From Paraphysomonas bandaiensis (lineage: Eukaryota > Protista > Chrysophyceae), in the NCBI GenBank assembly GCA_965644295.1, contig CBFFRP010000242.1, forward strand, positions 1 to 64,000: DNA of 64,000 nt, given 5' to 3'. Of this stretch, positions 725 through 62,865 are shown piece by piece (the stretch's first letter is position 1; every line of letters begins with the position of its first letter). Under the pieces are notes generated by a model. That model saw only the letters and a program-made list of their open reading frames with translations, made no database searches and was not told the DNA's origin. The position numbers were made by a program, and so were the translations under genes.

Positions 725-895
725 CTACAAGCTTAAAGTAGATAATACTGCCCATAATAAATAGTATATAGTGCTCTCTTAATTACTAATTTTTAATTAA
801 ATAGCAGACTACGAATTCTAACTACTTCTCGCCCTCTACTGGCACATCAGGATCTTCTTGCAGGGCTTCATGGAGGGTATTAGCATCTCACAACA

Positions 896-2575: not shown

Positions 2576-2600
2576 CCCAGCTAATAGATAGTTTTCATAA

Positions 2601-14980: not shown

Positions 14981-15132
14981 GTGGGGGAATGATATTATAA
15001 GAATATATATGATCATGTCGCATCCATCGGGTGATACAATGGACCCCACTCTCACACACTCTATATCCTATATAACACCCCCTTAAGTAACCCTTTAGCA
15101 CTCATGTTTCTTCCCCTCTAATACTTTATACA

Positions 15133-21469: not shown

Positions 21470-22295
21470 TTATCTGGGGAATGCATGTTATAGTGTTCGT
21501 GGCGTAAAGAAATAATGTTTCAAACTTCCCGCCATATAGTTATCGCGGTTAAAGCAAGAGTCACTCAAACTGGCCATTTAACTTTGCATGCGCATAAATA
21601 TTAATGTTATCAATTTTCTAAATGATAATTTTCTATTATGCCAAATCGTGAAGAAATCTTGAAAACATTGCATTAGTGTCCTTCTCTTTTGATTTGATGT
21701 GGTAGAGAAGAGGATATAATATGTGTTTTGAAGAAAGTATAATACATTTGGCGACTACAAGTGCAAACTTAAAATGTAGTACAATAAAACATACCCAATA
21801 TCAATAGAAAGATAGAACAAAATCAAGCACAAAGTAGAGACAATATATCAACTATGTACGTGAATCACACCATTATCTATCTGATAGTAGCACTGATACT
21901 ATGGTCTTTGTTTACCCTCTGTATCACCACAGAGGCCATCCATATCGGTGAGATATTTCTCTAAAACTGATGTCACCATAAGAATTACTTCAACTTATTT
22001 ACTTCTGATTGTGTTGGGTAAAGTATCTTAAGCTATATCTAATATGAGCATACTTATGATGAGTCGGATATATCTGCACTCCATCCGATATATACATGCA
22101 GGTGTCGTAAGATATGTATATACAGTATATACTGAGGGTCCCGATACTATGACTGCTATGAAAGATTGAGCTAACTACGAAGTAAACAATGACCAAAGCC
22201 ATATCTAGATATTGAAATCTAATGATAATGCAGTATAGACACATTGGAAACCCATGTCCTCATAACGAAAAAGGGACGCACGACTGGACACATGC

Positions 22296-23351
22296 ATGTA
22301 TGTATGTATGTATGTATGTATGTATGTATGTATGTATGTATGTATTATGTATGTATGTATGTATGTATGTATGTATGTATGTATGTATGTATGTATGTAT
22401 GTATGTATGTATGTATGTATGTATGTATGTATGTATGTATGTATGTATGTATGTATGTATGTATGTATGAATGTTTGTATGTATGTATGTATGTATGTAT
22501 GTATGTATGTATTTATGTATGTATGTATGTATGTGTTCATGTATGTATGTATGTATGTATGTATGTATGTATGTATGTATGTATGTATGTATGTATGTAT
22601 GTATGTATGTATGTATGTATGTATGTATGTATGTATGTATGTATGTATGTATGTATGTATGTATGTATGTATGTATGTATGTATGTATGTATGTATGTAT
22701 GTATGTATGTATGTTTGTACGTATGTATGTATGTATGTATGTATGTATGTATGTATGTATGTATGTATGTATGTATGTATGTATGTATGTATGTATGTAT
22801 GTATGTATGTATGTATGTATGTATGTATGTATGTATGTATGTATGTATGTATGTATGTATGTATGTATGTATGTATGTATGTATGTATGTATGTATGTAT
22901 GTATGTATGTATGTATGTATGTATGTATGTATGTATGTATGTATGTATGTATGTATGTATGTATGTATGTATGTATGTATGTATGTATGTATGTATGTAT
23001 GTATGTATGTATGTATGTATGTATGTATGTATGTATGTATGTATGTATGTATGTATGTATGTATGTATGTATGTATGTATGTATGTATGTATGTATGTAT
23101 GTGTTCATGTACGTATGTATGTATGTATGTATGTATGTATGTATGTATGTATGTATGTATGTATGTATGTATGTATGTATGTATGTATGTATGTATGTAT
23201 GTATGTATGTTTGTACGTATGTATGTATGTATGTATGTATGTATGTATGTATGTATGTATGTATGTATGTATGTATGTATGTATGTATGTATGTATGTAT
23301 GTATGTATGTATGTATGTACAGTTGTATGTATGTATGTATGTATGTATGTA
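22296..23351. repeat. (TATG)n microsatellite, ~1.05 kb
   Basis: Directly visible, with recurrent variants GTGTTCATGT and GTTTGTACGT. Confidence 0.98.
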
Positions 23352-23610
23352 CTCTGTACTGTATATGGGTACTCTGTATTCTTATCGTATGCAAAGGTCT
23401 CCATCATCAGCAGTCCTCTGACCCCCACCATTCAATTTTCCATTGAATTGATTGGATGGAATGGTTGGATTGAGATCAACGGCCATTCATTAGAAATTAG
23501 TTACAGCTATGAACGCATATATATAATCCATTGCATTTCTATATCGGTGAATAGCTATACCATTCATCATTATTTATCTAAATATTCTTATATCTCAATA
23601 GTTTTGATAG

Positions 23611-27496: not shown

Positions 27497-27903
27497 ACCT
27501 TTAACTATAGATGACCGCATATGAAAGTATACGACTTTTGTTGTCCGCTGTTTTTACTGACGTGCTTTTTCTTTCATATTGTAATGATAAGACTTCAATG
27601 GAACCATGTGCTTAATAAATTGAATTTTGAATTATTTGATGATCTACATAATTTGTTCTAATATTCAGTGCTAAGGTGGCAGGAGGTTTCTTTATAAGGC
27701 ATAGGTCTACGAAATTTATACCGTGGTACAGTATCAACGCGCTTGTGTCGTAATGGTATTCTGTATTCTAAAATTGAAGATACAAGCTTTGTTCACTTAT
27801 ATTGAAGATACAAGCTTGTATGAGTAAGCTTCCCTCAACAAAGTCGGAGTAGTGTATGCCTTATTATTAGCACTAGGTGTGTAAGAATCGAACATCTTAC
27901 TAT

Positions 27904-28249
27904 CCCTCAACAAAGTCGGACGCACTTTTTCATAGTGTTCTGGAGGATAAGTGGAGATATTTCTCCAAGAAACTAACGTGAGCCGCGTACATATCCAGCA
28001 GATATTGTTCTGCTCACTCATAGTCAAATGCTTGTGTGGTACAAGGGGCACTAATATAAGTATCACTTGTGTAGTCATCCTTGGGCTTTGACGAATAAAC
28101 AGGTATCCGACTCAAGGGCATCCGAGGCACTGTGTTTCCTTTGAGTGATAGAGCGAAAGTGGCTGCGCCTCGGTGCTTGCGGTGACGCTAAGCAGCTTTC
28201 GTAGCGCACAATAGTAGGATATCAGAGTTAGAGTTGCTAATAAACAGAC
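27904..28249 (+). ncRNA. Putative structured mobile RNA element, copy A (internally deleted)
   Basis: Homologous to 48571-49069 and 35081-35526, with conserved hairpins and no ORF. The homology is certain; RNA function is inferred. Confidence 0.5.
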
Positions 28250-29093
28250 ATTCTCTACTTAACGCTTATTTATTAAGCACATGGTTCCATTGAAGTTTTA
28301 TCATTATTTCTAACACTAAGACATTCACTACTATGAGCAAACGTGAAAAAAAATCGCCAATGTTCTGTAAAATATAGGCTAATACGTCAGTGAATTAGTA
28401 AAAGTACACTACGAGTGCTGGTATTTCATCGTTGACAAAGCATACTACATATTCTTCACCCCACAATAAGTCAGTTTTGATTTGTGTATTTTGACACAAA
28501 GCAGAAGGTAGACGGAGCATTGTCTCTGTTGGAACATGTTTCCTGGTTGTTTTCTGTTTTCTGACAGCATTGTCCTTATATGAAGATATATTAACAATAT
28601 TTATAATATTTTCTACTTGTAATGCAATAAATACTGCTAATAACAACTATACTTGCGACATTTTCATTAACCTCTCAGATACGAATTACAATAAAATAAT
28701 AACTCAATACTTAGATATGAAACCTGGTGAAATCGCTATACCAGGTTTAGGTATTACCTTCACTTTAGAGGGAGTTTTATGATTCGCTTAAAGTTGTACA
28801 ATTAAAGCCTGTGGCTTAAGTGTTTTCACCGCTACGATGGACACCTCCACTACTGCATACACCTTTAGAAAATAATTTCCACTACGAGATCGAGTTCTGC
28901 CATATTTGTTTACACGTTGCGACATGAAAACTAGGCTACACTTTTCCAACAAAATTGCAACATGAATACAGCTTCGCTTCAATGACGTGTAACTTTAAAC
29001 TTGTGAATTACATTTCCATGCAATAAGAATATTATATTATAAGCAAAAAATAGCTAATCTTGTCGCTATACTACACCATCATGCGAATTTATC

Positions 29094-30671: not shown

Positions 30672-30981
30672 AGACTCAGTTGGTTAAGTATGAATATACA
30701 TGTACATGTACAGTGTATTAGTATCAGTATTTTTCTATAGAGAAATTACGTATATATATATATGAGTATATTAGTTGAGAATATGCGTATAGATTACAAG
30801 AAATTTCTTGGATAATATACATATAAGGTGAGTGGTTGTATAGGAGTATGATGTACTATTGGTATGAGTATTTGAGGGATTGAGGGGTTTCCTATGAACT
30901 ACAGTGATATTGTAATATTTTGGTGTCGAAAAAGCGAAAATATCGGGTTTCTTACACCAACTGGACCTCCTCGTCTATATT

Positions 30982-31100
30982 GCCTCAAATATTGAGACAA
31001 TAACTATCTGTATTCTAGCCGTAATTATATTGCAGTAATATAGAGAAATTTTGCTTCAATTTATTTCCGAAAAATAAGATGCTGACTGCCGATACAATGA
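30982..31100. repeat. Dispersed repeat, copy 2 of the GTATCGGCA family
   Basis: GCCTCAAATATTGAGACAA...GATGCTGACTGCCGATAC is shared with 62748-62862 and, inverted, with 3563-3670. Confidence 0.75.
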
Positions 31101-33741: not shown

Positions 33742-35080
33742 TTTGGAATCTAATTAAGGCTGTGCCGGAAACCAATATATACTTATATATGTAAGTGTTA
33801 AGTGTATCACAACACCATTTAGCCCCACTCATAACTAAAAAAAAGGCAAGTCAGCCACACATCATCCATTCCAATGACTTTACGATCTTAAAAAGACAAA
33901 CTGAAAAAAAGAAATGAAGAGTGTAGGTGAACGGGTTACGAATAGTAGAATGAACGGATTACATATTTTTTCAGTTCACACAATCTCATTGGACTGTTAC
34001 AGTATATCTATCTACAGCAGCAGTACATACATGCATGCATCCATCCATCCATACACACATGAGCCTATAGAGAATTAACACTGTGCTATTGATGCAATCC
34101 TTTCTACTTATAAGCCAGCTGTATGCTATTAAATTGCATACACTGTGTACTATACAATTATTTGGGTAATCCAGTAAATGGGTATAGCACATCCCACACT
34201 GTATTTATATCTATGTGCATGTAGCATATAGCAGTCTTAAACAGGGCAGTCCATCGCAATGCAAGCAGAAAGTATTCCAGTAGAAGTACTTAAGAAACCA
34301 TTGAATCCGTCATGTAAATAGACATCTGAGAGTAAAGGGATTCTTATTGATGTCATGTGAGAAGGGGTTACGAATGACTTGCACACAGACTCAGGATTGA
34401 TAATATAAATCTCCGGCCAAAATTGAATTGTGCTGAACGACACATTCCTCATTACACAAGTATTGGATTACGGCAGTAATCAATTAAAGTTCTTCTCCGT
34501 CTGTTACGTCATCAATTATTGTATGGCACTTATTATATACACTTCTTTAATAGTTCATTTTGTTGAATCGTGATTCAAAATCCAGTGAATCGTCTATTTG
34601 TACTCAACACATGAAACTCATTTTACTTGATTTTTTCCAGCAAGTGAGCATATTTTTCTTTTCTGCGCTCGGTGGATGGACAAATCCAGCGAATTTGGGC
34701 AAATCCAACACTTTTGCCTGTGTAAGCCTGTGTATAGCTATATAGCTGTGAAACTGAAACATTGACATTATTGAAGATACTGAAATTACTATAATAATTT
34801 ATCAACTATCTAGTCAAACTATGGATTTCTTTTAGCAGATAATTTCTAATATGTTACCCTTAAATGGCATTCATGTACTCAGAGTTTGATAGTGCCAATC
34901 TAGTTCTACTGCCATTGCCTTATTTAGCATTTTATTCCATTATATTATTTAATCTTTTCTTCAATACAGTTACATGACAGCAAGTAAAATTAAGAAGTGA
35001 ATGTGTTATTGCTAGCAATAAGCGTGTAAAGCGAAAACTAATTTAGTATTGCGATTTTACTAACTAGTGCTTAACTGTGG

Positions 35081-35526
35081 TATCCTACTATTTGGCGTCA
35101 CCTCACAAGCACCAAGATGCAACCACTTTTGCTCTCTGTCCTTAAGGTGAACAGCCCCGATTCATGACTTCAGTAGGCATCCCAATACCCCGGATGCCTG
35201 ATTTTTTGTCAAGGCCCAAAGACGTTTACACAAGCATTTGGCTATGAGTGGGCAGAACGTTATGTAGCTCACGTTAGTTTCTCGGAGAAATTTATGACTA
35301 GAGGCACTTAAAACGTTCGTATGTCGCTATATAAGTGCTATATTAAACGTCTTTTTATTTAGCAGTAGGCGTTAGAAACCTGCACCAATATAGTGGTTAG
35401 TTGAATGCTTGTCATGCTAGCTAGACCTCTACCCATAACTAATCCGTACAAATTCCATTATCCTATTATTTAACGCTACAGAAGCTGCTTGTGCGTCGCC
35501 GCAAGCACCAAGGTGCAACCACTTCC
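35081..35526 (-). ncRNA. Putative structured mobile RNA element, partial copies B1 (35081-35290) and B2 (35339-35526)
   Basis: Reverse-complement homology to ~48625-48950 and ~48883-49069. B2 is flanked by the 17-bp direct repeat CTATATAAGTGCTATAT. Confidence 0.5.
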
Positions 35527-36033
35527 TATATAAGTGCTATATAAAAAGTATAATAGTAGTTTTCTATATAATATAGTAACTTCAGAGATACGAACTAAAA
35601 ATCACCAATGGGAGATAGTAACAGAGCCCACAACAGAATGGGTGGATCAAGGAGCGCTATCATCTGATAATGTTTAGAGTTTAGACCGGAAAGTGTCGAC
35701 GTAGTCATGGGGTTTTATACTTATGACTAATTAGCATACCATTACTTATAACATATGTGTGGTCTGTGACTTTTATTGTTGTAAATCTGAGTAATATGTT
35801 GGAAAGTAGTCAATATGTAATAAAAAATATTATTCACATTGAATTATATTTGTAGTTCCTTATTGTACATGGTAATACCCTTTTCCGACCATTATCAAAA
35901 ATTACCAGGTTTTGGCATTACCCCGACTTGTACTCAAGGTAGGCCACACAGAAAGCTGTTATCTGAAACTTTTAAAAAAGCCATCATACACTTACAACTT
36001 CAAACTTATCTAACTCAATTTCAATCATGCTTT

Positions 36034-39000
36034 CTAAAAAAACGATTTTTCGAAAAAAGATGTGACCTGCGATGAAAATGTATCCATAGTTGATGATGCA
36101 ACTACTGCTGGTGCGAATTTCAATATAGCTTCGTTAACTATCTGCTGCTCTTCAGGAGGATAATTCAAGATGGTACATATCACACGTCCTAGGTGCTGTA
36201 CCTCCACCGCCTCTTTGGCCTTAACAAACCCCATAAAGGCATTTCGGAGGTACATGATACGCTGTTCCCGCACTTCGTCTCCTCCTGATAAGCTATTGTG
36301 TATACCTTCCCTATTTTTTACGCGAGATATCTGTAGGAAGAAGAAAATACACATATTACATATTCGCAACGGAAAAAAAAAATCTACCTCGCACTTGAGG
36401 GCTTTGATATCATCTGATAAACGCACCGCTAGACGCTTGAACTTCTCCAACTCCTTGGCAGAAGACGGCGTGCTGCGGGATGCGTCCCGGGAAATATCAA
36501 TCTCACGCTGGGCTTGGTTACGAGCAATGTCCAGCAACGTCTGAATCTTTTGCAGAACAAGTAAAATATAATTCCTAAACATGTCACTTATAGTGCTTAT
36601 ACCTCATCATCATCATCACAGTTGTTCTCTGTCTCTGAGTAACCCTCCGGGCCAGTACTGGTATCGCTGGAAGGTTGTAACTCCACCTTCTCTTCCTTCA
36701 TGACACCTGAAGGTGATTCCTCCACGTCCTCTGGGGGATTCAATGGTGTCAATGTCGTGCTCGTGGAATCCTTATGTCGCGGTGTGACAGCTTTCTGAGG
36801 AGTCGCTGAAGACACTTTTCTGCTTCTTCCAACGGGAGACGTATTGTGATGATGTTTCTGATCGTAGTGAAGTTTTTCTCGCAGCTGTCTTATTTCCTCG
36901 TCTTTGGCACTGCACAATTGCCGAGCGAGATCCCCTCTCTTTTTAATCTCTTGCATGAGTTGCTGTTCTCGTACTCGAAGACTCTCCACAGTATCATTTA
37001 AATCCTCAATTTTTTCTAGGAGTGGGCCAGATGACACATCCTCCTGCTAAAATGTAACACCAATAAACTTAGGTATGGCTTCGCAGTAAAACTTACCGCT
37101 GTATCCTTGGTTTGTAGAGATTTCAGTAGCTCCTTCTCTGCAGCTCTTATTGATGAGAGCTCAATAACACATTCATCTATGCGTTGGCGAAGACTTTGAG
37201 TGAGCATTTTCTCTTTCTTAATCTCATCCTGAAGCACTTTAATAGCTTCCATTCGGTGCATCTCATGCTTCCTTACTGTGTCTTCAGCCTCCCGGATATG
37301 GGCTTCCTGGAGCTATGGTGTGTATGTATTATCACAAGTCGATTGAAACGTACGAAGATGCCAGACTACCTTGATTTTCTCGGTCAGTTGGAGTATCTTT
37401 TCATCAGATGCTTTTTGATCTGATGCCGTCTTCTTGAGTGAAACTCGAGCTCGGTCACGATACAGTTCAAACGTCTTCTGACTATTGGTCAACTCATTCT
37501 CAAGTTCAACGATTCTATTTCCTAGATGGGTCCTCTCTCTACGATGACATTACACAAAAATACGATGCAATCCGCAGCATACCTATCGAATTGACTTTCC
37601 AAAAGCTCTTGTACCGTCGGGGGCATATCCACATCTTCGACATCTGTGACAGAAACATGAGTGTATAAGCTACATACAACAGTCGTCCCAACCAATAGAG
37701 AAGCCACTCTCGCTATCGACATTACGGCTTTCCACCCACTGCAGTACATCGTGCTCAGGTTTCCACTCCAAACGATTTCCACCAGCCTCAGCCGTAGAAG
37801 AGCAGTAACTACATCATGTGATCAGTGACGTTAGATAATAAATATAGTAGCTACGCACCTAACCAAACACCATATTTGGTCGCCGTCATCAACTCGCATT
37901 AGCACTTCAAATGAGCTAGGCACGGCCATTCTCATTGCAGATTCACTCTCATGTTGTGCTAGCTGCACGTTAACGGCATCTAATGTGGCTGCTTTGTCCA
38001 ACAACTCGTCCTTTATGTTCGCAATGGATTTCTTGCAATCCGCCAGCTGACCATCAAGCAAGGCTACATGGTCCTCGTAGCTAGCAATCTGAGTATCACG
38101 GCCTTCAAGGGACTGCTTCAGATCGTCGATCGTTGCAGACAGAGTGGTGTTCAACTCCTTCAGTTGATTCATCTCAGTAGATGCATTGGCACTAACGGAC
38201 AGAGCAGCACTGAGATCTTTCTTCATCATCGTCAGAGCACCATTCAGGCGTTCACATTCCGCACTCTTCGCATCCACAACTACTTCTAGTCGGCACACTT
38301 TCGACTCAGATTCGGTGCACTTTTCTCGTGCGAGATTAGCGTCCTCTATTAATTTGAGTTTCTCAGTGTTGAGCTCATGTAAGATCTCATCATGCTTGGC
38401 AAGTTTCGCAGTAAGTTCATCAACAAGAGATTTGTTACTTGCGCATTCATTTCTGGAGGCATCTAGTTCTTCCGAAAGTGTACGAACGCGCAAAATCAAC
38501 TCTTCTGATTTGGCGGAATCGGCATTGGTATCTTCTGCCATAGCGCTTTTGATTGCGGTCTCGTTTTTCAGCTCATGAATCTTGTCGTTAAGGACGCTTA
38601 TCTCCGAGCGAAGTGACTCTATTGTGGCTTCTTTCTCACGAACAGCTTCATTAGTCTCCTTGACTCTGCGAATCGCCTTACTTCGGTCAGCTTTAGCTTT
38701 TTCGATTGAGGCCTCAACGTCTGCTTTCATTTTGATTTTTTCCTCTTCAAACGAGGTTAACTGTGCTGTTAACCGGCAATCACTCTCATCTCTGGCAGCC
38801 TCGGCGGCTGCAAGTTGCAATTGAAGAGCCGCACATTGTGCTTCCATCTCCTCTACACGTTTACCAAGGGCCTCATTTTCCGAAACTTTAGAATCAATAA
38901 CACCTTTCAGCTCACGCAATTTAGCAATCAATTTTCCCTTCTGTACAGCTAGAGTATTCTCCAAATTCGATTTAGATGATTCCGTCTCACTCAGCTGGAC

Positions 39001-42000
39001 CTTTAATGATTCACATTCTGAGGATCTTGCATCCATCTCAGCCTTCAACTCCTTCACTCGTGATATAACCTTCTCAGTCTTGGCATGAGCCTCATCTCGC
39101 TCCTTCTTGGACGCAGCAGCCTCACCATCCAGCTTCTCTATATCACGACGAAGCTCCGCTATTAGTGAATCCTTCTCAGATATTGCTGCGCCTCCATTAG
39201 CAGCATTAGCCTCAAGTTCAGATACTCGGCTTCGTAACACATCAGCTTCTGCTGTCAACTCAGCTAGAGTATTCTCCAAATTCGATTTAGATGATTCCGT
39301 CTCACTCAGCTGGACCTTTAATGATTCACATTCTGAGGATCTTGCATCCATCTCAGCCTTCAACTCCTTCACTCGTGATATAACCTTCTCAGTCTTGGCA
39401 TGAGCCTCATCTCGCTCCTTCTTGGACGCAGCAGCCTCACCATCCAGCTTCTCTATATCACGACGAAGCTCCGCTATTAGTGAATCCTTCTCAGATATTG
39501 CTGCGCCTCCATTAGCAGCATTAGCCTCAAGTTCAGATACTCGGCTTCGTAACACATCAGCTTCTGCTGTCAACTCAGCTAGAGTATTCTCCAAATTCGA
39601 TTTAGATGATTCCGTCTCACTCAGCTGGACCTTTAATGATTCACATTCTGAGGATCTTGCATCCATCTCAGCCTTCAACTCCTTCACTCGTGATATAACC
39701 TTCTCAGTCTTGGCATGAGCCTCATCTCGCTCCTTCTTGGACGCAGCAGCCTCACCATCCAGCTTCTCTATATCACGACGAAGCTCCGCTATTAGTGAAT
39801 CCTTCTCAGATATTGCTGCGCCTCCATTAGCAGCATTAGCCTCAAGTTCAGATACTCGGCTTCGTAACACATCAGCTTCTGCTGTCAACTCAGCTAGAGT
39901 ATTCTCCAAATTCGATTTAGATGATTCCGTCTCACTCAGCTGGACCTTTAATGATTCACATTCTGAGGATCTTGCATCCATCTCAGCCTTCAACTCCTTC
40001 ACTCGTGATATAACCTTCTCAGTCTTGGCATGAGCCTCATCTCGCTCCTTCTTGGACGCAGCAGCCTCACCATCCAGCTTCTCTATATCACGACGAAGCT
40101 CCGCTATTAGTGAATCCTTCTCAGATATTGCTGCGCCTCCATTAGCAGCATTAGCCTCAAGTTCAGATACTCGGCTTCGTAACACATCAGCTTCTGCTGT
40201 CAACTCAGCTAGAGTATTCTCCAAATTCGATTTAGATGATTCCGTCTCACTCAGCTGGACCTTTAATGATTCACATTCTGAGGATCTTGCATCCATCTCA
40301 GCCTTCAACTCCTTCACTCGTGATATAACCTTCTCAGTCTTGGCATGAGCCTCATCTCGCTCCTTCTTGGACGCAGCAGCCTCACCATCCAGCTTCTCTA
40401 TATCACGACGAAGCTCCGCTATTAGTGAATCCTTCTCAGATATTGCTGCGCCTCCATTAGCAGCATTAGCCTCAAGTTCAGATACTCGGCTTCGTAACAC
40501 ATCAGCTTCTGCTGTCAACTCAGCTAGAGTATTCTCCAAATTCGATTTAGATGATTCCGTCTCACTCAGCTGGACCTTTAATGATTCACATTCTGAGGAT
40601 CTTGCATCCATCTCAGCCTTCAACTCCTTCACTCGTGATATAACCTTCTCAGTCTTGGCATGAGCCTCATCTCGCTCCTTCTTGGACGCAGCAGCCTCAC
40701 CATCCAGCTTCTCTATATCACGACGAAGCTCCGCTATTAGTGAATCCTTCTCAGATATTGCTGCGCCTCCATTAGCAGCATTAGCCTCAAGTTCAGATAC
40801 TCGGCTTCGTAACACATCAGCTTCTGCTGTCAACTCAGCTAGAGTATTCTCCAAATTCGATTTAGATGATTCCGTCTCACTCAGCTGGACCTTTAATGAT
40901 TCACATTCTGAGGATCTTGCATCCATCTCAGCCTTCAACTCCTTCACTCGTGATATAACCTTCTCAGTCTTGGCATGAGCCTCATCTCGCTCCTTCTTGG
41001 ACGCAGCAGCCTCACCATCCAGCTTCTCTATATCACGACGAAGCTCCGCTATTAGTGAATCCTTCTCAGATATTGCTGCGCCTCCATTAGCAGCATTAGC
41101 CTCAAGTTCAGATACTCGGCTTCGTAACACATCAGCTTCTGCTGTCAACTCAGCTAGAGTATTCTCCAAATTCGATTTAGATGATTCCGTCTCACTCAGC
41201 TGGACCTTTAATGATTCACATTCTGAGGATCTTGCATCCATCTCAGCCTTCAACTCCTTCACTCGTGATATAACCTTCTCAGTCTTGGCATGAGCCTCAT
41301 CTCGCTCCTTCTTGGACGCAGCAGCCTCACCATCCAGCTTCTCTATATCACGACGAAGCTCCGCTATTAGTGAATCCTTCTCAGATATTGCTGCGCCTCC
41401 ATTAGCAGCATTAGCCTCAAGTTCAGATACTCGGCTTCGTAACACATCAGCTTCTGCTGTCAACTCAGCTAGAGTATTCTCCAAATTCGATTTAGATGAT
41501 TCCGTCTCACTCAGCTGGACCTTTAATGATTCACATTCTGAGGATCTTGCATCCATCTCAGCCTTCAACTCCTTCACTCGTGATATAACCTTCTCAGTCT
41601 TGGCATGAGCCTCATCTCGCTCCTTCTTGGACGCAGCAGCCTCACCATCCAGCTTCTCTATATCACGACGAAGCTCCGCTATTAGTGAATCCTTCTCAGA
41701 TATTGCTGCGCCTCCATTAGCAGCATTAGCCTCAAGTTCAGATACTCGGCTTCGTAACACATCAGCTTCTGCTGTCAACTCAGCTAGAGTATTCTCCAAA
41801 TTCGATTTAGATGATTCCGTCTCACTCAGCTGGACCTTTAATGATTCACATTCTGAGGATCTTGCATCCATCTCAGCCTTCAACTCCTTCACTCGTGATA
41901 TAACCTTCTCAGTCTTGGCATGAGCCTCATCTCGCTCCTTCTTGGACGCAGCAGCCTCACCATCCAGCTTCTCTATATCACGACGAAGCTCCGCTATTAG

Positions 42001-44026
42001 TGAATCCTTCTCAGATATTGCTGCGTCTCCATTAGCAGCATTAGCCTCAAGTTCAGATACTCGGCTTCGTAACACATCAGCTTCTGCTGTCAACTCAGCT
42101 AGAGTATTCTCCAAATTCGATTTAGATGATTCCGTCTCACTCAGCTGGACCTTCAATGATTCACATTCTGAGGATTTTGCATCTATTTTGTTGTGAAGTT
42201 CGTGCAATTTGGATTCTAGATGGTGAGTATTGCTGTTATTTTGCATCTCGATTAACTGTTCCGATAAGTGATCTATTTGCCTCTGTTTTTCTTGAATCTC
42301 CACGCACCGTTCATCAAGTTCCATATGTAGTCTGTCAAGACGTGATACCAAAGTTTGTTCCGGATTGGTTGCAGAAATAGGGGTTGCTCCGAGTTCATCC
42401 TGAATCTCACGCAGGCGTTTTTGGAGATTGTTGTATATTATCGTTATTTCATCTTCACAATCCGGCTCTTGCACACCATCATTACCACCCATCACTGGAG
42501 ATTGGCCGTCATCGGCAGCGACATCTCGCAACACACCTGCTACATGATGTGTCCTTGTCGCTAGTTCATCTCTCACACGCTCTTTTTCAGTCTCAAGTCG
42601 CCGAATATCAGCTGCGATTTCATCACACTCACTTCGGCTGTAAGACTCATCAGACGCCTTGGAGGAAAGTTCTGCCTTCTTCTGCTTAATTTCATTGCGC
42701 AAAGAAGCTAATCGCACCCGCACATCATCGCACTCATCCAGAGCGGCAGTTGCACTGATATGAGATTCAGCGCGGCTGCGAATTGGAGTGGACGGGGTGG
42801 CTGCCCTGCTGCCAGACTGCAATAATTCCAACTGCTTCTGTAAACGCTCGTTCGCTGCCATTAATGTTGATATCCTATCACATTCATCTAATTCTCGTGA
42901 GTTGTCAACAGGTGTCGGACTAGATCGAGAGCGCAAGTATTCAATCTCATTAGCTGCACTCATTGCCTCCTGTGTGACCACCTCCAAGTCATTTTGTAGC
43001 GCAGTTTTCGCCAGTTCTAACTCTTCAATTCGTGCTGACTTGCTCGCTACCTCTGTTTCTAGAGATGTAATGCGAGTTTGTAGTTCTCTCATCTGTGCAA
43101 CTGTTGGGAGTTTAGCCACTTTGGCTTTCACTCCATCCATGAGCGTGTTCAGCCTTTTTACAGCAACGGCTCTGTCATTCACTGCAGCAGACAGCTCGAC
43201 TTTCAGCCTGTCGATCACCATCTCCTTCTTTTCAATCTCCTGCTTCAAAGATCCAACCGAATTGCTGTCTGCCTCGGCTATTTTCGCCTTCATTTCACCC
43301 ACAAGAGCTCGCAGCCTTGATTTAGTTGCATCTCGTTCTTTACACGCTGTGGCGACTTCTCCTTTGAGTTTAGTTATCTCCGCCTCGGAGGTCTGCAGGG
43401 GTTGGAGGTGCTTAAGTCTTTCCGCGGTCAATGCCTCCCGCAGTCTATCAGATTCCTTGGATAGTCTGGATATTTCCGTCTGTGCAATGGTTACTTGTGA
43501 ACGGACCTGCAGCAGTTCCGTCTTGCATATCGCTAGCTCGTCATTACCTTCTCCAGTAGCTTCACCATCTCCTCCTGAAAATATTATCAAATCTATGAGA
43601 AATAAGAAAATGTAAACAACCTTTCGTGATCATCAACATCAGTTCCTTTTGAAGGCGTTCGTTTTCTTCTTTGGATAATTGGAGCTCATATTCCTTCTGC
43701 ATTAAGTTGTCCTCAAGTAATCTGTTTGCATCTTGTAGATTCTTGTACATATCAGAAAGCTCAATATTGTCGTCTCCTTTACTCTGTTGATCTACAAGTT
43801 GTTGTTGCAAATCTTTTATTGTATTCACAAGATTATTCATATTCTTTTCAATTTCATTTTTTTCTGATATTGTTTGAAGACAAACATCTTCAGCTGTTTT
43901 ATGTTTTTCTTGAAGATCACGACATTTTATTAATACTTTCTTTAAGAAAATAATTAATTCATTACGATCCATATCATTAATACTTTTCTTTTTTGTTGTA
44001 ACATCATCATTTGGTGTATCTGCCAT
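36034..44026 (-). CDS. Giant coiled-coil GRIP-domain golgin (multi-exon)
   Basis: Start MADTPNDD at 44026, >1900 aa of heptad-rich sequence, and the C-terminal GRIP-like motif YLRNAFMGFVKAKE...LGRVICTILNYPPEEQ. Confidence 0.85.
38947..42177 (-). repeat. Coding tandem repeat, 315 bp (105 aa) x ~10.25
   Basis: Units recur every 315 nt. The only differences I could see are at 42026 (Gly>Asp) and 42154 (silent). Confidence 0.97.
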
Positions 44027-44659: not shown

Positions 44660-47600
44660 ATGAGTCTTCTAAGTACCTGGGGTAACAAAGATACATCAAA
44701 GGTTACAGATGATGAAATATCAGCTGCTAAATTAGGACTGATGTCAGCTACTGAACAAGCTAGTGTATTATTTGATGCATTACGAAGTATATCATTAAAC
44801 TGATCATATATTCACTTATATATACTACTATTATACAGATAATGATATTCCAACTATTCGTAATGTTCTTCAAGTTAATCGTTCATTACTTAATCAAAAA
44901 ATGTTTGGCTTTGAGGGTCATGATATATACGGCATTATTCCTAATGTATTACTAATATATACATCATATATTTTATCTTTAACTGGATATATGTTTAGTC
45001 TAAGAATAAGCGCTGTTACTCCTATACTGGAATCGAAAAGGTTTGTAACTAATTAAATTAAGGATATTGTAATTCTTTGTAGGATGGCTATTTCTACCCT
45101 CTCCATGTGGCGTCTGAGATGGGACATAAGTCCCTTATTATACTACTCGTCCAGGTGACTACCGTTATTCCATTATCAGTTGGATATTGTTAGTAATATG
45201 ATTTTAGGCGGGTGCCGACCAATCGGTGACAGACTACAGGTTTATTGTATTGCTGTGAACCAGACATGTGCTTTTACTTACATCAACCTTCGCCATAGAG
45301 GAGAAACAGCGGAGCAGAAAGCTAATGGGGAAGGTCTTCATGCTTTTTATGAACTCAGGGGTCTGAGGTAGCCCACGTGCTGAAACATGAAGTGTCTATA
45401 ACAATGACGATCGCAGGTTTCAGGCTGAGGAAAAGTATGAAGGGCAGCTGGACCGCTCCGGTATAAACATCATATACTCCGAATTACATGGCCAGTACAC
45501 TAATAGCTGTTCGCAGGGCAACGCAGTCGGAACGGTTCACTTTACTACAAGCCCGAAGGATATCACGAAACGGCGAAGCTCTTGTACAGAGGTGGTTGGA
45601 AAGACAATCAGTACCACGGTGGGTGATGCTAAATTTTGTCATTTGCATATATTGTTTTAGTTAATCATGAGATAAGCAATGTACTTACCGAATGTGCCGC
45701 TTCAGGACATGGGACACTGTACTGGGTTGGGTCATCTAATCTGAAGTATTTCGGGCGGTTTAAGAACGGACAGTTTCATGGGTCGTAAGTGGCACTGGAT
45801 TCGCTATTGTCTGTATTTAATCAGTCTTCAGTGGATCTTTGTTCGATCAAGATGGCGAAAAGGTGCTACTTCATACTCGTCTTATTTTTACACTTACAAT
45901 GTAACAGATATACACTGGTTTTTTCCGTGAGGGACTAAAGGATGGCCGCGGCGAAGAATATTCAAAAGGAAAGTTAATTTACAAAGGTGAATTTTCAGCT
46001 GGCGCAAGGCACGGGTTCGGGGTTGCCTTCCTTTCAGAGGGTCACAGATTTATGGGTATGTATACGCTCTGCGTATATAATGGATGTGTTATGTGTTGTA
46101 TAGGACGGTTCGATAAGGGTGTCATGGCTGGAGTCGGTGTTTACTTTCATCCTAACGGAAATCGATTTGAAGGAACTTTTTTCAATAACAAACCCGATGG
46201 ACATGGGACGTTTTATGAGGTAACATATGCTTGCAATGTTCGAAAGAGTTAATGCATTATGCTAGATTGACCCTGAGACTGGAGATGAGGTGAGTGCCAC
46301 GAGCGCGCAGTGGACGATGGGTAGAAAGGTGGGAATTTTATTTCAATGTGGCGGTAATGTTGACAACCTTCAGACCAAGGAAGTTGAGCAAAAGTTTGAG
46401 GCTAAGATAACTGATATTCCTGTTGCTGGAAAGGGCCGTGCTACTCCTTCGGGACCGGGAAAAGTGAGATTGTGCCGTACTTTTGTTGTGGTGTGTTGAT
46501 AACTTTCTCTTGAGCAGGTGGCCGATGTGCGGGATAGATCCGCATCTGCTGATAATGGTACCGAAACTGTATTGAATGCACTCGTTTGACTTTTTGCAGC
46601 TGAAGAAGGAGAGGTTTTGTCTGGAGACTGGAAGCAAATGCTAGGGAAGTATTTAAGGTACCAGTAGATAATATGACTAGTTGTAAGCTAACGACATGAG
46701 GAGATTGAATGCGAAGGACGCAAAGAACTTTGATATTGCTGAGGTAGACATAGGATTTTTATTTTGTTGTTCCTAATGTAATTTTAGGAACTCCACATCG
46801 TTGAATCCGAGGTACGATTCCCTATCATCGAGTCATTTGGTGATCTATACACAGGACGCAGACGGTGAGGATGAAGTGGAGGACGAGTACAATGACGTTG
46901 ATGACGTTAACGGGTTCGTTCAAGGTGAATTATCTTTACTGTGCCTTATGATGCTGAAGGTTCCATTTCGTTGAGAATCCAGCTCTATTTGTGGCTTATT
47001 CATATGTGTGTGCCGGTACGTAAGTATACGACGTGTCTACGCTATGTTATTCCATAATTGCAGCTGCCAAAACATTTGAGGAAAGAAAACTTACCAGGTT
47101 GACGGAATTGCGTTCAGTGACTTACCATTTAATTCGTATGATACAGAGATTTTAGAAACCTTCCTGATTTTGAGCAGGTACGCATGACAAATAATGTAAG
47201 AAAAGTTTACCTAATAATGTTTATATAGATATATCATCTTGTCATTGATGCCGTTGATACTTATAACGAGCGTTGGGAGAAAGAGTGCAAAGATCAGGAG
47301 GCAGCGAGATTAGATCGGGAGAGACAAGCTGCATTGGAACAAGATACTTCGAAAGATGGTAAGAAAGAGTCGTATAAGAGTTCGAAAGAAAAGGTAGTAA
47401 TGTCAAAGTGTATTTGGGAATGCATGGCTTACGCTGGCCTCATTATAGAAAGATGGAGGCAAATCAAGTACCGGAGCCCCCACACCGCCACCTCAATCTC
47501 CTGCAACTGGAAGGGATCAGCTATTGGCTGCTCTCAGAAGCGGCGGAAAAAAGAATGAGAAAAAGAGCACTACATCGATTGGGGAGGAGACGCAGTCGAA

Positions 47601-48150
47601 ACGTCTTGTGTTTATGTCAGAGGTACTCTCTTTTGGGATGCATTTACTGTGTTGATGATTGTGGTGCGTAGGCGGAGAAGAAGGAGGAGATGCTTTTGAA
47701 GCAGCGTGCTGAGTTAAGAGCAAAGCAGGTATTTTGTGTAATTGCTTTCACTGCTTATAAATGAAATATATCTAGTCGGCAGTGTTGCTGGATCCTGAGG
47801 TTGAGGCGAAACTAGGAAATGATATTCTGGAAGCATTGGAAGAAGACATCGCCCGCGAGCTTGAGCTTGAGTTGGAAGTGGATGTAGAGGACACAGAGAC
47901 GATGACTGGCGACGAAGGAGCCAATATCGACCCCATGAGTGCCCCCCGTTTAAGCAAAGAGTCGTCGCTCTGGAGCCGTGTCGCGTCGACAGTTGGTGAT
48001 GATATAGATGAGCAAAGACGTGACGACGAAGCAATATTCGGAAATCGACGTCGTAGAAGAACAACGACGAAAGGAAACATAGTGGTTGTTAATGAATTTG
48101 CCTCGGAATTGTTGTATATCATGCGAACTGCAACTGAAATGTTGGGCTAA
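44660..48150 (+). CDS. Ankyrin + MORN-repeat protein with an acidic/coiled-coil C-terminus (many short exons)
   Basis: Start MSLLSTWGNKD. Ankyrin YPLHVASEMGHKSLIILLVQ/AGAD. MORN repeats YRGGWKDNQYHG, YFGRFKNGQFHG, YKGEFSAGARHGFG, FEGTFFNNKPDGHG. The exon structure is approximate. Confidence 0.8.
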
Positions 48151-48570
48151 AACTGCCGTGAATCTAAAAACAGTCATGTGTATAATGTATTCATATTCAG
48201 TGTTTTAATTGTAGTCTTCTTTGGATTACGTGTTAGCGTTTAGTCATTGTCAATTTAAACTTTAAACTATCTATGTACTGTAGTAATTTGTATTTAGTTC
48301 TGCATGGTCTGATTTAGAATTCATATCTTGTGTTGAAAGTGTTTAGTCTTGGTCGTTTGATTGCGATAAGATGGGTTGTCGTTATTATTATTACCTCAAT
48401 ATATAATAAACTCTGCTGATCATGTCGATTTGAATTAATATATACTATGGAAACTTTTCCACTATGTATATTCCACCCCATAGGAAGTCCAATTTTCTGC
48501 TTGAAGTATTTACTTAATTATTAAGTCAATTGATATTTTCATTGAATTTGTTGAGTTCTGCTATATGAGA

Positions 48571-49069
48571 CCCTCAACAAAGTCGGACTCGCACCTTTTC
48601 GGGGGATAAGTACCGGAGAGGTTCTCTCTGGGAAACTAACGTGAGCCGCAAACATAGTCAGCAGATATTCTTCTGCCCACTCATAGCCAAGTGCTTGTGT
48701 GGTACAAGGGACACCAATAAGTGTCACTTGTGTAGACGTCTTTGGCCCTGACGAATAAACAGGCATCCGGGAATGGGCCCACCTCAAGGGCACCGGGACA
48801 GGGTCCACCTGAAGGGTAACCGGGGTATTGGGCTGTCTGCTGAAGTCAAGCATCCGGTATGTTCACCTTAAGGACTCAGAGCGGAAGTGATCGCACCTTG
48901 GTGCTTGCGGCGACACACAACCAGCTTTCGTAGCGTTAAATAGTAGGATAAAAAAGTGTGTACTGATTAGTTACAGGTAGCGGTCTAACTAGTTTGTCTA
49001 GCATTCATCTAGCTACTAAGTTGGTGCGCGTTTTTAACGCCTATTGCTAATAATAAGACTTTTAATATA
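48571..49069 (+). ncRNA. Putative structured mobile RNA element, copy C (longest, ~500 nt)
   Basis: GC-rich island in AT-rich intergenic DNA, with multiple hairpins conserved in copies A and B. Confidence 0.55.
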
Positions 49070-49892
49070 TATGAGAGCAATTGAAAGCTGTAGTTATAAG
49101 GTATTTGGCTATGAGTGGGCAGAAGAATATCTGCTGACTATGTTTGCGGCTCACGTGTTTATCGTACTGTGAGAATGAATGACGATAAGTATATAGTGGT
49201 AAAACGGAATATAGTGACGATGCAAGTTGTAGTGACGAAGTAAGATCGTCGTTCGAGAAATGAGTGGTAGTACAGACAACATGAAATTGATGAATGATAA
49301 GAGATGTTGAATTATAATTTATATTTCTCATCATTGAGTATAAGTTACCTTCTGTTGTTAAGTTAATACTTCTCATATATTGTCAAACTTTGACAGAATT
49401 ATCTCGTTGTATTCACGTGTTAAGAGATATGCGTGAATCAATTAATCTTAATACACACAGACAAAAATTAAAACAAAAGAGCAGTTGCGTATACAATATA
49501 CAATGCCTTGCTTCTTGCTTCAGATAGAATTTCATGTCATCATATATGTCCAGTTATAGTATGTTATATGGAGAGGTCATTGCTCAAATAAATATTCAAG
49601 TAGTAAAATATTTCGTTTGAGATACATATTATATATAATATACCAAACATATACTATCTAAAACGGATTATTTATCATACACTGCGATGTACGCGAATTC
49701 AATGCGGTATTTACGTCTAAATTCAATTGGTACGAGCTCTCACACTTAAGCAGAACATATGATCCAGATATTAGGCAATATACATATAGACGTATACAGT
49801 ATTCAAAAGTAATTCTCATTTAGAATTATTTCCTAGGAAAAATCAGAAACACTTCGACACATATTACACGCGCAAGCTAAAATACATAGAGA

Positions 49893-51813
49893 CTAGTAGT
49901 TATCTATCGCATTGGTGGAAGAAAAAGTGCTGTCTTCATCGCCACCGAAGTCAGATATCGTTACGTCTATTTTGCTGATTGTCCTACCTAGCTCCAATTC
50001 TCTTCTCTCATCACTAACGCTTTCATTCCCAAGTTGGGCTATAGCACTCCTCGAACTCGCCGTCTTCTCAGGCTCCCTTATCCATGGGTCGAAAAGTGTT
50101 ATTAATATCGGGCTTGTCCTATATACAGCAGATTAACGAAATAATTCTACTAACATTTTCGTAAAACGATTACATTGTCATCAGTCCAATAATGAGCCAC
50201 ATCATTTTTGGTCTCTGTTTCCCATTCTCCGGTAGATAGGTGGACAAAAGGTATCCACTCATTAGTCCCACAGGTATTTTAGCAGCGAACAAAGGTGCTG
50301 AGGCGAGGGCAGAAAATGATGCCTCGCGACCCTATTCATAATAAAGGAACAATATCAAAAGTAGCAACCAATTCGAATTCACACGCACCTCTGGGGCAAC
50401 TGTCATCACGTAGTCATATAAACGGGGGCTCCAGATGGCCTCGCCAAGACTGAGGGTCACGTTCATACACACCACAGCCCAAATTGATGTCGATCCTGCA
50501 AGAAAAAAAGGCGAACCAGCGGTTAAATACCCTCCCCATTTGATCATGTTGAAGTGATTGTACGTGTTTGTCAGCGCTGCTACAAGTGGAGTCAGAAATA
50601 TGATCATGAAGGGGTTGATCGAATATAGCGTTCCTTTGGGAACATTGTCGCCAAAACACCGCACCAAATAAGTAGGCTGTGTAGCGTCCAAGTGCCGGAA
50701 TATAGCATGCAAATTCACCAGCAGCAAGGTGAGTGCAGCAAACCTCCAAAAAGTTGGAGAGGTAAGCAGTTCACGAGCAGTCACCCATGGATTCTGTTGA
50801 ACAGGCTTGTATTCCGAAACTGAGGAACTTGGAGCAGCAGGGGTAGGGTTATCTTCACTAAAATCTACTACTTCATTAGCAGCAAGTGAAGCGCCCGGAT
50901 TAACTGGGTTCTCCACCTCGTCCGGTGAGCCAATTCCCGGTTGTTCTGACTTGTCTCCTCTCCTATCCACTGACTCCTCTTCCTCCTCAAATTTAACCTC
51001 TCTCAAGTACATAGCAGCAATGACCAGCGAAATAAGGTTGCTCACGGTACAAGTAAGTATCACCAGTCTATATCCAGTCCACCGCACCCCACCGAACTGT
51101 ACCCCTTCCTTCAATCCTATGTTCAGGGCATCTACGATTGGGCCAGACACAAGTGCTGCCATGTTCATAACACTGTAATACAGACCAAAGGCAAACCCTC
51201 GAAACTTCGTGCTCGTGTATCTGTAGATAACAAATAAATTAACCACATTCTTATATATATTAACTAAATACCTTTTGATTGCTATAGTTAACATCGGAAT
51301 TCCAAGACTCGTCCCAATAGGGTATAAGGCAAAGAGCACAACGTAAACAAGGGTTTTGGACGAAGCAGTTGCCACCAAAGTCGATGCCACAGTAGATATT
51401 GTAAAGCCTGCTACTAAGGAGTTTCTCACACCCATATTATCGTTCACCCAAGATATCAGCAACCCCCAGAGGGTAATGGCAGCACCCCACATCCCATATA
51501 CCATCCCTGCTTCAATATCACTTACATGAAACTCATCATGTAAATAAATAACTAAAATTTGACTAAGTGCAAAATAACTATATGATTCTAAGAATTTTAA
51601 ATAGAATATAAAGTAAATATCTTTTGGAAATTGTTGTATGGCTCTCTTACAACTGTCTATATCCTCATGAAGCTTATCAATAGACTGACGTATAAACAAA
51701 CGTAATGATAATTTATGAAATGTATTCTTTTCATTATCATCATCAGTATGAACTACACGATGATATCTTTCAGCTTTTTTTGTATTTATAATTGATTTAA
51801 TTTGTGATGTCAT
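49893..51813 (-). CDS. Major facilitator superfamily transporter (POT/peptide-transporter-like)
   Basis: About 12 hydrophobic segments; LKFLESYSYF, FAFGLYYSVMN, YSINPFMIIFLTP, SLGEAIWSPR. Stop codon at 49893. Confidence 0.85.
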
Positions 51814-56165: not shown

Positions 56166-58400
56166 TTACGCACTATCGCAGGTGTGCGTGTTTGCTCTGA
56201 GTGTCGTGTGGTGTAGAACTGTATCATAGAAAGTTTTAAACTGTTCGAAATTAATACGCCCGGTTTTTCCAGTGTCCATGGCTTCAAATAGCGCCTCAAT
56301 ATCAGGAATGCTGGTATCACGCTCTGAATTGTCTGTAACACCATATGACGCGGCATCTACGGTGCATGTCTGGAGTAAACACGCTACAACTAATTTCAGC
56401 TCCTCAAGGTCAATATACCCCGTCTCATTAATATCTACATAACATAGTGTTACATACACACATGAGATAAAAATTCCCTTACCAAATATCTGGAAGTACA
56501 ATCGTGCATTGGAGTCCTCTAGAGGATCGCTATTGATGGGCTTGAAAGCCAGCATTGTGAGTAAGAATTCCTTTATGTTTACAGTACCAGAGCTCCCAAT
56601 GTCGAAAATGCTGAACACAGCAGGGTTTGCTAGCTCAGGTAAACCGCACTGCAGCAGGATCTCCACGAAACCCGCGTAATTAATCTCACCCTCCGCAGTG
56701 TCCGTTTCATTAGTCATGCCACCGCGCTCACTCTTACTCCTCTCTCTCAGTCCAGGGTGCTTGAGCTCATGCCCATGAATGGTATGTCTCCCTTCCACCT
56801 CTTGCGACCATATACGCGAGAACTTAAGCGGCAAAGTGCCGTGCCGTCTCGCATTGATCACATTGTTTTCATCCTCTGAAATAGCGGAGCTATTGACATC
56901 ACCATGATGAGATTCTGCCGAATTGTTGCTAGTGCAAGCCATCAAATCGGGGGGGAAATTCATGTCCCCCCTACGAGATCCTCTCAGGGGACTACTCGGG
57001 CCACTGGTAATTCGATTCATATCTCCTCTTCTTGTTTCCTTAGAAGGACTTCCAGGTGAATGGCAACCGACAGGAGATGAACAACGAAACGACGATTTCG
57101 ACTGACTGGACATGACAGAACGGCCAGACAACTGTGATCGAGATACTGATTTCACTATCATGCGCTTGAGGTTTTGAAGCTTTGAATTAAATGACTCATC
57201 AACATCTTCATCTCCTTCAAAACCACTTTCTGCACGTTCACGCAAAAAAGGTAACACTTTATGGAGATTCTCCCGTCGATCTTTGTTGTCAGATGTGATC
57301 TTATGATCTAGAAAAAAAGTTCGCAGCTTTTGTCGCAGAGCCAACTGCTTGATTCTTGCTACATATTCCTCACCAAGATCATTATCAGGCGCCTGATCTA
57401 CCAACCACGGGTGCTCTAATATTTCAGGTACTGTTGCTCGTTCTGACGGATCCTTTGTGAGCAGGTGGCGCACAAGGTCTTTGGCGGAATCAGATATGTT
57501 ATCCCAACCGATGCCTGTCATATCGAAATACGAGCCGTGGGTAATCTGGTGCATGGCATTGGGATCATACGGTGCCAAACCGCTAAGCATGCTATATAAT
57601 GTACAACCAGCCTGCCAGATATCAGTTTTTTCACTGTATACGGATGATATGATGGACTCAGGAGCGAAACATCCGTTAGTTCCCTTTAGGGTGTAACACA
57701 GATGTTCATCCGAGCCTTCTGGCAGGTGGATCATTAGGCCAAAGTCAATTAGCCTTACTGGCGAATCTTCTTCATCCCCTACAAGCATTATATTTTCAAG
57801 TTTAATATCCCGATGAATGCAACGACGCCGGTGAAGGCACTCGAGAGCCCGAACTACTCGTTTGAACATTTTTGCAAGGTCCCTTTCGGATACAGCTTTC
57901 CTCTTATATATTCTGTCAGACAACTCTCCACCCTCAACCAATTCCATTACAATCACTGGATGTGGGGCTTTAAAGTTTTTCCCGGAAATAAGTCCTTCAG
58001 CAGTGTCCATAAATATCCCGTTGAGTTGCACGATACCCTCAGTACCCGTTAATAAACTCATCACCTCAATTTCATTAACAATATCCTGCTCATTAGGAGG
58101 CAACATTGTATACCCAAAAAATTTCAATGCTACTCGAGCTCCAGTGGATTTACACATCCCTGAATACACTTTCCCCATCCCACCCTCTTGTAAATAGCTG
58201 TTGATCACATAGTTATCAGCATGCAAAAACTCCACTGTACCATTCAGTTGATCGTACATTGAAGACATCTCAACTGATTGTTCTTCCACAGAAGATGGTT
58301 CGGTATTTCCCAGTACATCATTACCATCCTCTCCTGGTTTCTTGAAATCATATATAATCTCACTTAAAGGGTCTTTCTGCTTCGAACCACTGCAGCCCAT
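56166..58400 (-). CDS. Calcium-dependent protein kinase-like (CAMK kinase + EF hands)
   Basis: MGCSGS start; ALK, HRDIKLEN, DFG, APE. EF loops DIGSSGTVNIKE, DINETGYIDLEE (after removing the 48-nt intron 56435-56482) and DTGKTGRINFEQ. Confidence 0.9.
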   Translation of the reverse strand: MGCSGSKQKDPLSEIIYDFKKPGEDGNDVLGNTEPSSVEEQSVEMSSMYDQLNGTVEFLHADNYVINSYLQEGGMGKVYSGMCKSTGARVALKFFGYTMLPPNEQDIVNEIEVMSLLTGTEGIVQLNGIFMDTAEGLISGKNFKAPHPVIVMELVEGGELSDRIYKRKAVSERDLAKMFKRVVRALECLHRRRCIHRDIKLENIMLVGDEEDSPVRLIDFGLMIHLPEGSDEHLCYTLKGTNGCFAPESIISSVYSEKTDIWQAGCTLYSMLSGLAPYDPNAMHQITHGSYFDMTGIGWDNISDSAKDLVRHLLTKDPSERATVPEILEHPWLVDQAPDNDLGEEYVARIKQLALRQKLRTFFLDHKITSDNKDRRENLHKVLPFLRERAESGFEGDEDVDESFNSKLQNLKRMIVKSVSRSQLSGRSVMSSQSKSSFRCSSPVGCHSPGSPSKETRRGDMNRITSGPSSPLRGSRRGDMNFPPDLMACTSNNSAESHHGDVNSSAISEDENNVINARRHGTLPLKFSRIWSQEVEGRHTIHGHELKHPGLRERSKSERGGMTNETDTAEGEINYAGFVEILLQCGLPELANPAVFSIFDIGSSGTVNIKEFLLTMLAFKPINSDPLEDSNARLYFQIFGKGIFISCVYVTLCYVDINETGYIDLEELKLVVACLLQTCTVDAASYGVTDNSERDTSIPDIEALFEAMDTGKTGRINFEQFKTFYDTVLHHTTLRANTHTCDSA

Positions 58401-62703: not shown

Positions 62704-62865
62704 CTACAGCGGTATCGGCATCCTTTGTGTATTTTTGTTCAGAGATGCCTCAAATATTGAGACAACAATTATCTGTATTCCAGACGTAGTTCTACTTCAG
62801 TAATGTATACGATATTTTGCTTCAATTTATTCACGAAAATATATGATGCTGACTGCCGATACGAG
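62704..62865. repeat. Dispersed repeat, copy 3 of the GTATCGGCA family
   Basis: Internal inverted motifs GTATCGGCA (~62712) and TGCCGATAC (~62854). Homologous to 3560-3940 and 30982-31100. Confidence 0.75.

Follow-up and report, generated by a model that had tools for sequence, protein, structure and literature searches.

An abundant family of short non-coding elements in Paraphysomonas, very probably SINE-like retroposons, with a folded and exchangeable 3′ module

The 64-kb stretch of DNA analysed here (the window) comes from the nucleus of a marine eukaryote, and its long, intron-poor open reading frames (ORFs) include members of the HECT, ABC-transporter, ankyrin, MFS, and kinase/EF-hand families. 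The host is Paraphysomonas, a chrysophyte and a heterotrophic marine flagellate. The kinase/EF-hand ORF on the minus strand (positions 56166-58400) agrees at 727 of 728 residues with an MMETSP1103 transcript labelled taxid 36769, Paraphysomonas, when a 48-nt in-frame intron is allowed. This intron leaves the ORF open, and the plain ORF translation is therefore off by 16 residues relative to the real kinase protein. Public runs containing window DNA include marine metatranscriptomes.

The window also holds several kinds of repeats that are separate from the family described below. Between positions 38946 and 42186 lie 10 to 11 tandem units of 315 bp, which are 100% identical except for the last one (97%) and sit within a minus-strand ORF of 1919 aa (37831-43590). 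The array reflects either very recent homogenisation of a coding repeat or a collapse or expansion of the assembly. Positions 14102-15100 and about 22244-23650 are taken up by long arrays of 8-nt periodicity and strong G and T skew; they are microsatellite-like blocks that contain many overlapping ORFs in every frame and lie between pieces of ABC-transporter genes. Other dispersed or inverted repeats (3560-3900, 30981-31098, 62746-62841, 12279-13767, and 61462-61687/63194-63399) are unrelated to the family.

The family is represented in the window by four copies and two fragments, or about one copy per 10 to 15 kb, and its homologous segments share approximately 80 to 87% pairwise identity in BLASTN and repeat finder comparisons. 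An earlier note on this DNA had placed such segments at 27904-28249 (+, segment A), at 35081-35290 and 35339-35526 (−, segment B), and at 48571-49069 (+, segment C), and both programs recovered them at these positions. The locations stand and the extents had to be redrawn: segment C ends at 49067, where its 9-bp target-site duplication fixes the 3′ boundary, segment A starts at 27832, and segment "B" consists of two insertions. The features of the family in the window are as follows.

27832..28258, plus strand: copy A, of a subfamily with an alternative ("type II") 3′ region
27849..27903, minus strand: nested 55-nt tail fragment inside copy A, inverted and heavily 5′-truncated
34996..35293, minus strand: copy B2, without a head, with internal deletions and a type II 3′ region
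35344..35525, minus strand: copy B1, a tail-only copy of 182 nt that holds the 3′ module only
48562..48570: left target-site duplication of copy C, TATATGAGA, identical to the 9-mer at 49068-49076
48571..49067, plus strand: copy C, a full-length element of 497 nt whose 5′ end is common to nine other copies
48571..48650, plus strand: head of copy C, with the fixed 5′ terminus (about 90 nt in intact copies)
48881..49067, plus strand: 187-nt 3′ module, more abundant than any other part of the family, ending in ..GCTAATAATAAGACTTT(T/C)AATA
49068..49076: right target-site duplication of copy C, TATATGAGA, a perfect 9 bp
49105..49156, minus strand: inverted family fragment of 52 nt, equal to nt 69-120 of copy C at 100% identity

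Copies A and C start alike, at CCCTCAACAAAGTCGGAC, and the copies share no ORF, as had been reported; their short ORFs are spurious. One of these, a minus-strand ORF running across the element, was used as a protein query and led to nine short marine-metagenome or transcriptome contigs (L122-L130), and a spurious sense-strand ORF of the tail, compared with protein representatives, led to two more short contigs (L131 and L132). Together these contigs add 11 copies to the window set. All 10 heads found in the window and in L122-L130 start at CCCTCAACAAAGTCGG, and the DNA upstream is unrelated in each. The 3′ end of copy C is likewise common to copy B1 and to three of the additional copies (L130a, L131, and L132): all five stop at ..AAGAC(N)TT(T/C)AATA(T), again with unrelated DNA beyond. 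No copy carries a poly(A) tail, and the repeat finder detected no terminal inverted repeats joining the element ends. A 14-mer from the head proved too short as a query against metagenomes, returning chance matches only (0 of 120 loci with the element), and an 18-mer query against viral contigs gave a single chance match.

Three insertions in the window are flanked by perfect duplications, of 9, 17, and 17 bp. The 9-bp duplication around copy C falls exactly at the ends that the other family members define. Copy B1 lies between the 17-bp repeats ATATAGCACTTATATAG at 35526-35542 and 35327-35343, and the nested 55-nt fragment lies between the 17-bp repeats CCCTCAACAAAGTCGGA at 27832-27848 and 27904-27920. 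The latter insertion splits copy A at nt 17/18, so that copy A reads as its first 17 nt, the 55-nt insert, and the same 17 nt again; the insert matches the family tail at 24 of 28 positions, a score reached by none of 2,000 shuffled sequences. Two of the three duplication-flanked insertions (B1 with 182 nt and the nested fragment with 55 nt) are truncated at the 5′ side and have intact 3′ ends. A possible duplication belonging to copy A itself is imperfect (TAAGCTT / TAACGCTT).

Copy C, the full-length member of the window set, is atypical in two respects, for it is without 10 nt (GTGGTGTTCT) that are present in other heads, and it has an extra 27-nt tandem unit in the length-variable "long arm" region, where the depth profile falls to about one quarter of the neighbouring depth. 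It is an older copy of the family. The 52-nt inverted fragment lies 37 nt past the right duplication of copy C, at the margin of another family of non-coding repeats. This second family (49161-49505) directly adjoins copy C, has no meaningful ORF, and reaches a summed depth of about 400 to 760 times the single-copy level in the DNA runs.

The abundance of the family was estimated by mapping the contigs of four runs on positions 46500-51500 at 80% likeness. In one DNA run (X1), 24,275 contig pieces fell on the element, and the summed depth in successive bins from 5′ to 3′ was 96k, 243k, and 344k, compared with 26 in the single-copy flanks. The summed contig depth of the family thus stands at about 10^3 to 10^4 times the single-copy level, a measure that is not a copy number. 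This depth indicates thousands of copies and a gradient rising from 5′ to 3′, and the density in the window is consistent with it. Among the interspersed repeats of the Paraphysomonas genome, this family is probably the dominant one. Family sequence also occurs in contigs of two RNA libraries, X10 and the poly(A)-selected X14; as assembled contigs, these are uninformative on transcription start, strand, and level, and no RNA contig from the two libraries covers the immediate flanks of copy C.

A full element of about 500 nt is composed of a head of about 90 nt, a body, and the 187-nt 3′ module. The head contains a P3-like hairpin (half deleted in copy C), an 8-bp hairpin formed by CCGGAGAG and CUCUCUGG, and the block GAAACUAACGUGAGCCGC, and it is a candidate for a self-cleaving (HDV-like) or a promoter region. 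The body consists of two palindromic hairpins and a length-variable region of 27-nt tandem units.

Several copies place a boundary at the start of the 3′ module. Copy B1 begins 1 nt inside it, with only the first G missing, a deletion in L122 ends at it, and in L131 and L132 the 187-nt module (48881-49067 in copy C) stands behind different upstream non-coding sequence. The type II 3′ region of copies A and B2 differs from the module but merges with it over approximately the last 35 nt (..ACGCCTATTGCTAATAATAAGAC..). Such an exchangeable 3′ module looks like the tails that SINE families borrow from LINEs, an analogy with those systems; neither the window nor the fetched loci yielded an autonomous LINE that carries this tail. 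In each DNA run about 68 contigs match the family as far as position 48878 and then read AAAATCCTGAAGTCAGCAGAT..., as do a few RNA contigs; the junction also occurs in L130 (3074-3105), and copies with it form a subfamily whose 3′ part is of a third kind. Positions 1-180 of the contig L131 comprise telomere-type (CCCTAAA)n repeats at the contig start and, after them, about 160 nt of another non-coding element, one that bears the 187-nt module; the arrangement may represent a tail-sharing family inserted beside a telomere.

Pfam scans of all neighbouring ORFs showed host gene families only, and no reverse transcriptase (RT), transposase, or TnpB gene was found beside the copies. The only RT detected is on the contig L130, which contains, at positions 1-3192, a 1063-aa ORF with RVT_1 and RT_RNaseH_2 domains, the pol of a Ty3/gypsy-type retrotransposon (PF17919). 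The family copies on this contig are antisense to the ORF and cut off its frame after the RNase H domain. This RT/RNase H was considered as a partner of the family and rejected, being of the Ty3/gypsy type, antisense to the copies, and interrupted by them.

The earlier note had proposed that the segments are a candidate mobile structured RNA, in which stems survive sequence divergence and selection acts on a fold specific to one strand. The short stems that it listed do exist in the sequence. Their survival, however, is not confirmed statistically: the whole-element fold is no better than that of shuffled sequences (z = −1.08 on the plus strand and −0.91 on the minus strand), and the minimum-energy pairs of copy C that are changed in A or B are retained no more often than shifted controls. 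Most of the cited stems never vary and therefore carry no information. RNAalifold predicted nothing on the full 14-row alignment because most of the rows are partial, and segments were folded instead with a column-shuffle control, giving the following consensus folds.

Head: z = −1.30 on the plus strand, not significant; z = +0.95 on the minus strand
Body (two palindromic hairpins): z = −2.63 on the plus strand; z = −5.08 on the minus strand
Variable middle: not significant on either strand
3′ module: −41.1 kcal/mol, z = −3.44 (1/300) on the plus strand; −27.8 kcal/mol, z = −2.29 on the minus strand

The 187-nt 3′ module is thus the only part for which selection on a folded, strand-specific RNA finds support. 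Its plus strand forms a long, G.U-rich consensus hairpin in which 96% of the cells are paired and compensatory changes occur at five pairs; among the cells that differ from the commonest pair, 19 are still paired and 11 are broken. Strand specificity does not hold for the body, where most of the cited stems lie and where the minus strand has the stronger signal. The argument from substitutions that give G.U pairs on one strand was drawn from too few copies and does not survive a larger set: in nine candidate helices across 14 copies, 16 derived cells are G.U and 21 are A.C. Decay of the copies therefore shows no strand bias, as is to be expected of dead retroposons. Three hairpins do look constrained in the source elements, namely, the one in the tail, the 8-bp one of the head, and one of 11 bp in the body. 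The head hairpin occurs in two well-paired forms, with one C-G to U-A change in L127, and the body hairpin is perfect in L128 and L129.

No Rfam model reached its gathering score anywhere in the 64 kb, nothing relevant matched copy C or L122-L126 at E values up to 10, and no tRNA genes were found. An origin as a SINE transcribed by RNA polymerase III (Pol III) was considered and discarded on several grounds, as there is no Rfam, tRNA, 5S, or 7SL match at E values up to 10 and no B box, and every head has a TTTT run at nt 26-29. Since its head does not descend from a Pol III gene, the element falls outside the SINEs in the strict sense.

Taken together, the segments are very likely a highly abundant, non-coding, non-autonomous non-LTR retroposon of Paraphysomonas, which is SINE-like, or SIDE-like if it is an internally deleted LINE. 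It is short and non-coding, it has many dispersed copies, its duplications are variable in length and sit at the exact ends, and its truncation is polar, from the 5′ side. The suggestion of the earlier note that the family is mobile through RNA is supported by the 9-, 17-, and 17-bp duplications, the 5′ truncation with intact 3′ ends, the fixed 5′ end, the abundance, and the 5′-to-3′ depth gradient. The segments are no new class of structured RNA; they represent the RNA of a SINE-like retroposon. The outcome that the earlier note set against its own proposal, a transposon whose stems are incidental, applies by half, since the family is a retroposon of which some structure looks functional.

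We infer a mechanism of the following kind for this retroposon. The plus strand would be transcribed, probably by RNA polymerase II (Pol II) or within host transcripts, because the head has a TTTT run and neither an A box nor a B box. An RT/endonuclease from an autonomous LINE would then bind the folded 3′ module, and the RNA would be copied at a nicked target by target-primed reverse transcription, a process that would leave duplications of variable length and frequent 5′ truncation. The fixed 5′ end would stem from an internal promoter or from HDV-like self-cleavage.

The second of these origins leads to a more specific reading, in which the head of the retroposon is an active self-cleaving ribozyme of the HDV-like type, as in L1Tc/NARTc, R2, and R2 SIDEs. 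It would release the RNA of the element from host co-transcripts by cutting exactly at position +1. This reading refines the retroposon explanation and does not replace it, and it would account for the fixed 5′ end; we regard it as possible but rather doubtful. The nested double-pseudoknot order P1-P2-P3-P3′-P1′-P4-P2′ can be drawn on the consensus head from +1, with these elements.

P1: nt 1-6 with 40-45
P2: nt 18-22 with 81-85
P3: nt 23-25 with 33-35, with an L3 of 7 nt, UUUUCGU
P4: nt 53-60 with 64-71, the 8-bp hairpin
J4/2: GAAACUAAC, which includes the candidate catalytic C

A relaxed descriptor of this order fits 0.36% of shuffled heads and 1.5% of random starts in the window, rates that flatter the fit, as the limits of the descriptor were relaxed after the sequence had been viewed. 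P3 shows compensatory change in copy A, where U-A stands in place of C-G, and P4 has the two well-paired forms and the C-G to U-A change in L127 described above. The TTTT run and the missing Pol III boxes are compatible with co-transcription, and L1TcRz likewise cleaves at +1 and has a P1.1 of one pair (PMC3185411). Against these points stands the canonical HDV-like rule that P1′ lies immediately 3′ of P3′ (PMC3774820): with this adjacency the head offers no solution, and a spacer of 2 to 4 nt is required. No G-C pair is available for P1.1 either, as A and U follow P1′ and would give a weak A-U pair only. In P1 and P2 there is no compensatory change, and several of the changes are disruptive. 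The head's consensus fold falls short of significance (z = −1.30), single heads give z values from 0.0 to +1.2, and the Rfam ribozyme models do not match the intact heads at E values up to 10. A ribozyme-headed SINE or SIDE, in which a non-canonical HDV-like fold (with the 2- to 4-nt spacer and an A-U P1.1) frees the RNA at +1 and the folded, poly(A)-less, exchangeable 3′ module recruits a LINE RT, is accordingly put forward with considerable reserve. If true, it would extend the "ribozyme plus tail" design of L1Tc and R2 to chrysophytes and to a free-living stramenopile, and it would widen the accepted HDV-like architecture; a self-cleaving head would be a rare protist case outside the trypanosomatids and a useful natural HDV-like variant.

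Other readings dispense with retroposition. In one of them each copy is a gene of a structured non-coding RNA family that has a function and is maintained by selection at every locus, as the conservation of several local hairpins and the significant fold of the 3′ module, which favours the plus strand, might suggest. The copies, however, decay like pseudogenes, with internal deletions or truncations in B1, B2, L122, and L126, and copy C is without half of a head hairpin. The count of derived A.C cells (21) is no lower than that of derived G.U cells (16). Thousands of copies with a gradient of 5′ truncation and terminal duplications, their insertion into one another and into a gypsy-type pol, and the lack of RNA contigs over the flanks of copy C also speak against selection at each locus, and we consider such a gene family very unlikely.

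It is similarly improbable, and slightly more so, that the copies are DNA-mediated elements (MITEs or fragments of Helitrons) or solo LTRs. Short, dispersed, non-coding sequences with internal palindromes are what such elements could leave, yet the family has no terminal inverted repeats, its ends are not TG..CA, and truncation is polar with the 3′ ends intact. Its duplications of 9 to 17 bp are also unlike the fixed length left by DNA transposons or the 4 to 6 bp of LTR elements. A guide (omega) RNA of Fanzor or TnpB, to which the non-coding and possibly structured nature of the element lends itself and nothing further does, has next to no probability, as the copies bear signatures of retroposition and no TnpB, Fanzor, or RuvC-type ORF lies near them (the neighbours are ABC-transporter, ankyrin, GRIP-domain, MFS, and kinase ORFs), and, there being no nuclease gene, it is therefore refuted for this window.

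The SINE-like retroposon thus favoured is an element of an ordinary kind, with an unusual head that is not of the Pol III type and a tail that is folded, exchangeable, and poly(A)-less. We found no paper on the transposable elements of this group of organisms, and the family is apparently undescribed in this host. Its description is of practical use for repeat masking and for the annotation of intergenic and UTR sequence, and it affects the interpretation of marine metatranscriptomes, as the family appears in poly(A) libraries. It also adds another SINE-like element without a head from a Pol III gene, and one whose 3′ modules are exchanged between families.

Classical SINEs have heads derived from tRNA, 7SL, 5S, or snRNA genes and are transcribed from Pol III promoters. 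The Paraphysomonas family differs from these in its head, which has no Pol III promoter and carries the TTTT run. In the "stringent-type" SINE/LINE pairs, such as eel UnaSINE1/UnaL2 and the SINEs mobilised by CR1, L2, or RTE, the two partners share a structured 3′ tail without poly(A). The present family resembles stringent-type SINEs (reviewed in PMC3747384 and PMC7245038) in having a 3′ module with a conserved stem-loop that is shared by different non-coding families, as well as in its missing poly(A), variable duplications, and common 5′ truncation. A second parallel is offered by the R2 SIDEs, which are internally deleted, non-autonomous R2 elements (PMC3414825 and PMC3774820) and likewise combine a 5′ candidate ribozyme with a 3′ RNA structure and no coding sequence between them; the R2 LINE protein needs the 3′ structure. 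R2 and its SIDEs are specific to a site in the 28S rDNA, whereas the Paraphysomonas copies are dispersed and intergenic, with unrelated targets. The third comparison is with NARTc, RIME, and SIDER of trypanosomatids, the non-autonomous partners of the L1Tc and ingi LINEs (PMC3185411, PMC4035085, and PMC3383444). Unlike L1Tc and NARTc, the Paraphysomonas family has no similarity to Pr77, a structured tail in place of their poly(A), a stramenopile host, and a candidate ribozyme fold that, as modelled, would be non-canonical. Like NARTc, RIME, and SIDER, it is short, non-coding, and very abundant, it has a fixed 5′ end (CCC..) and a head that does not come from a Pol III gene and is a candidate for promoter activity and/or for HDV-like ribozyme cleavage at +1, and, like them, it would be mobilised in trans by a LINE.
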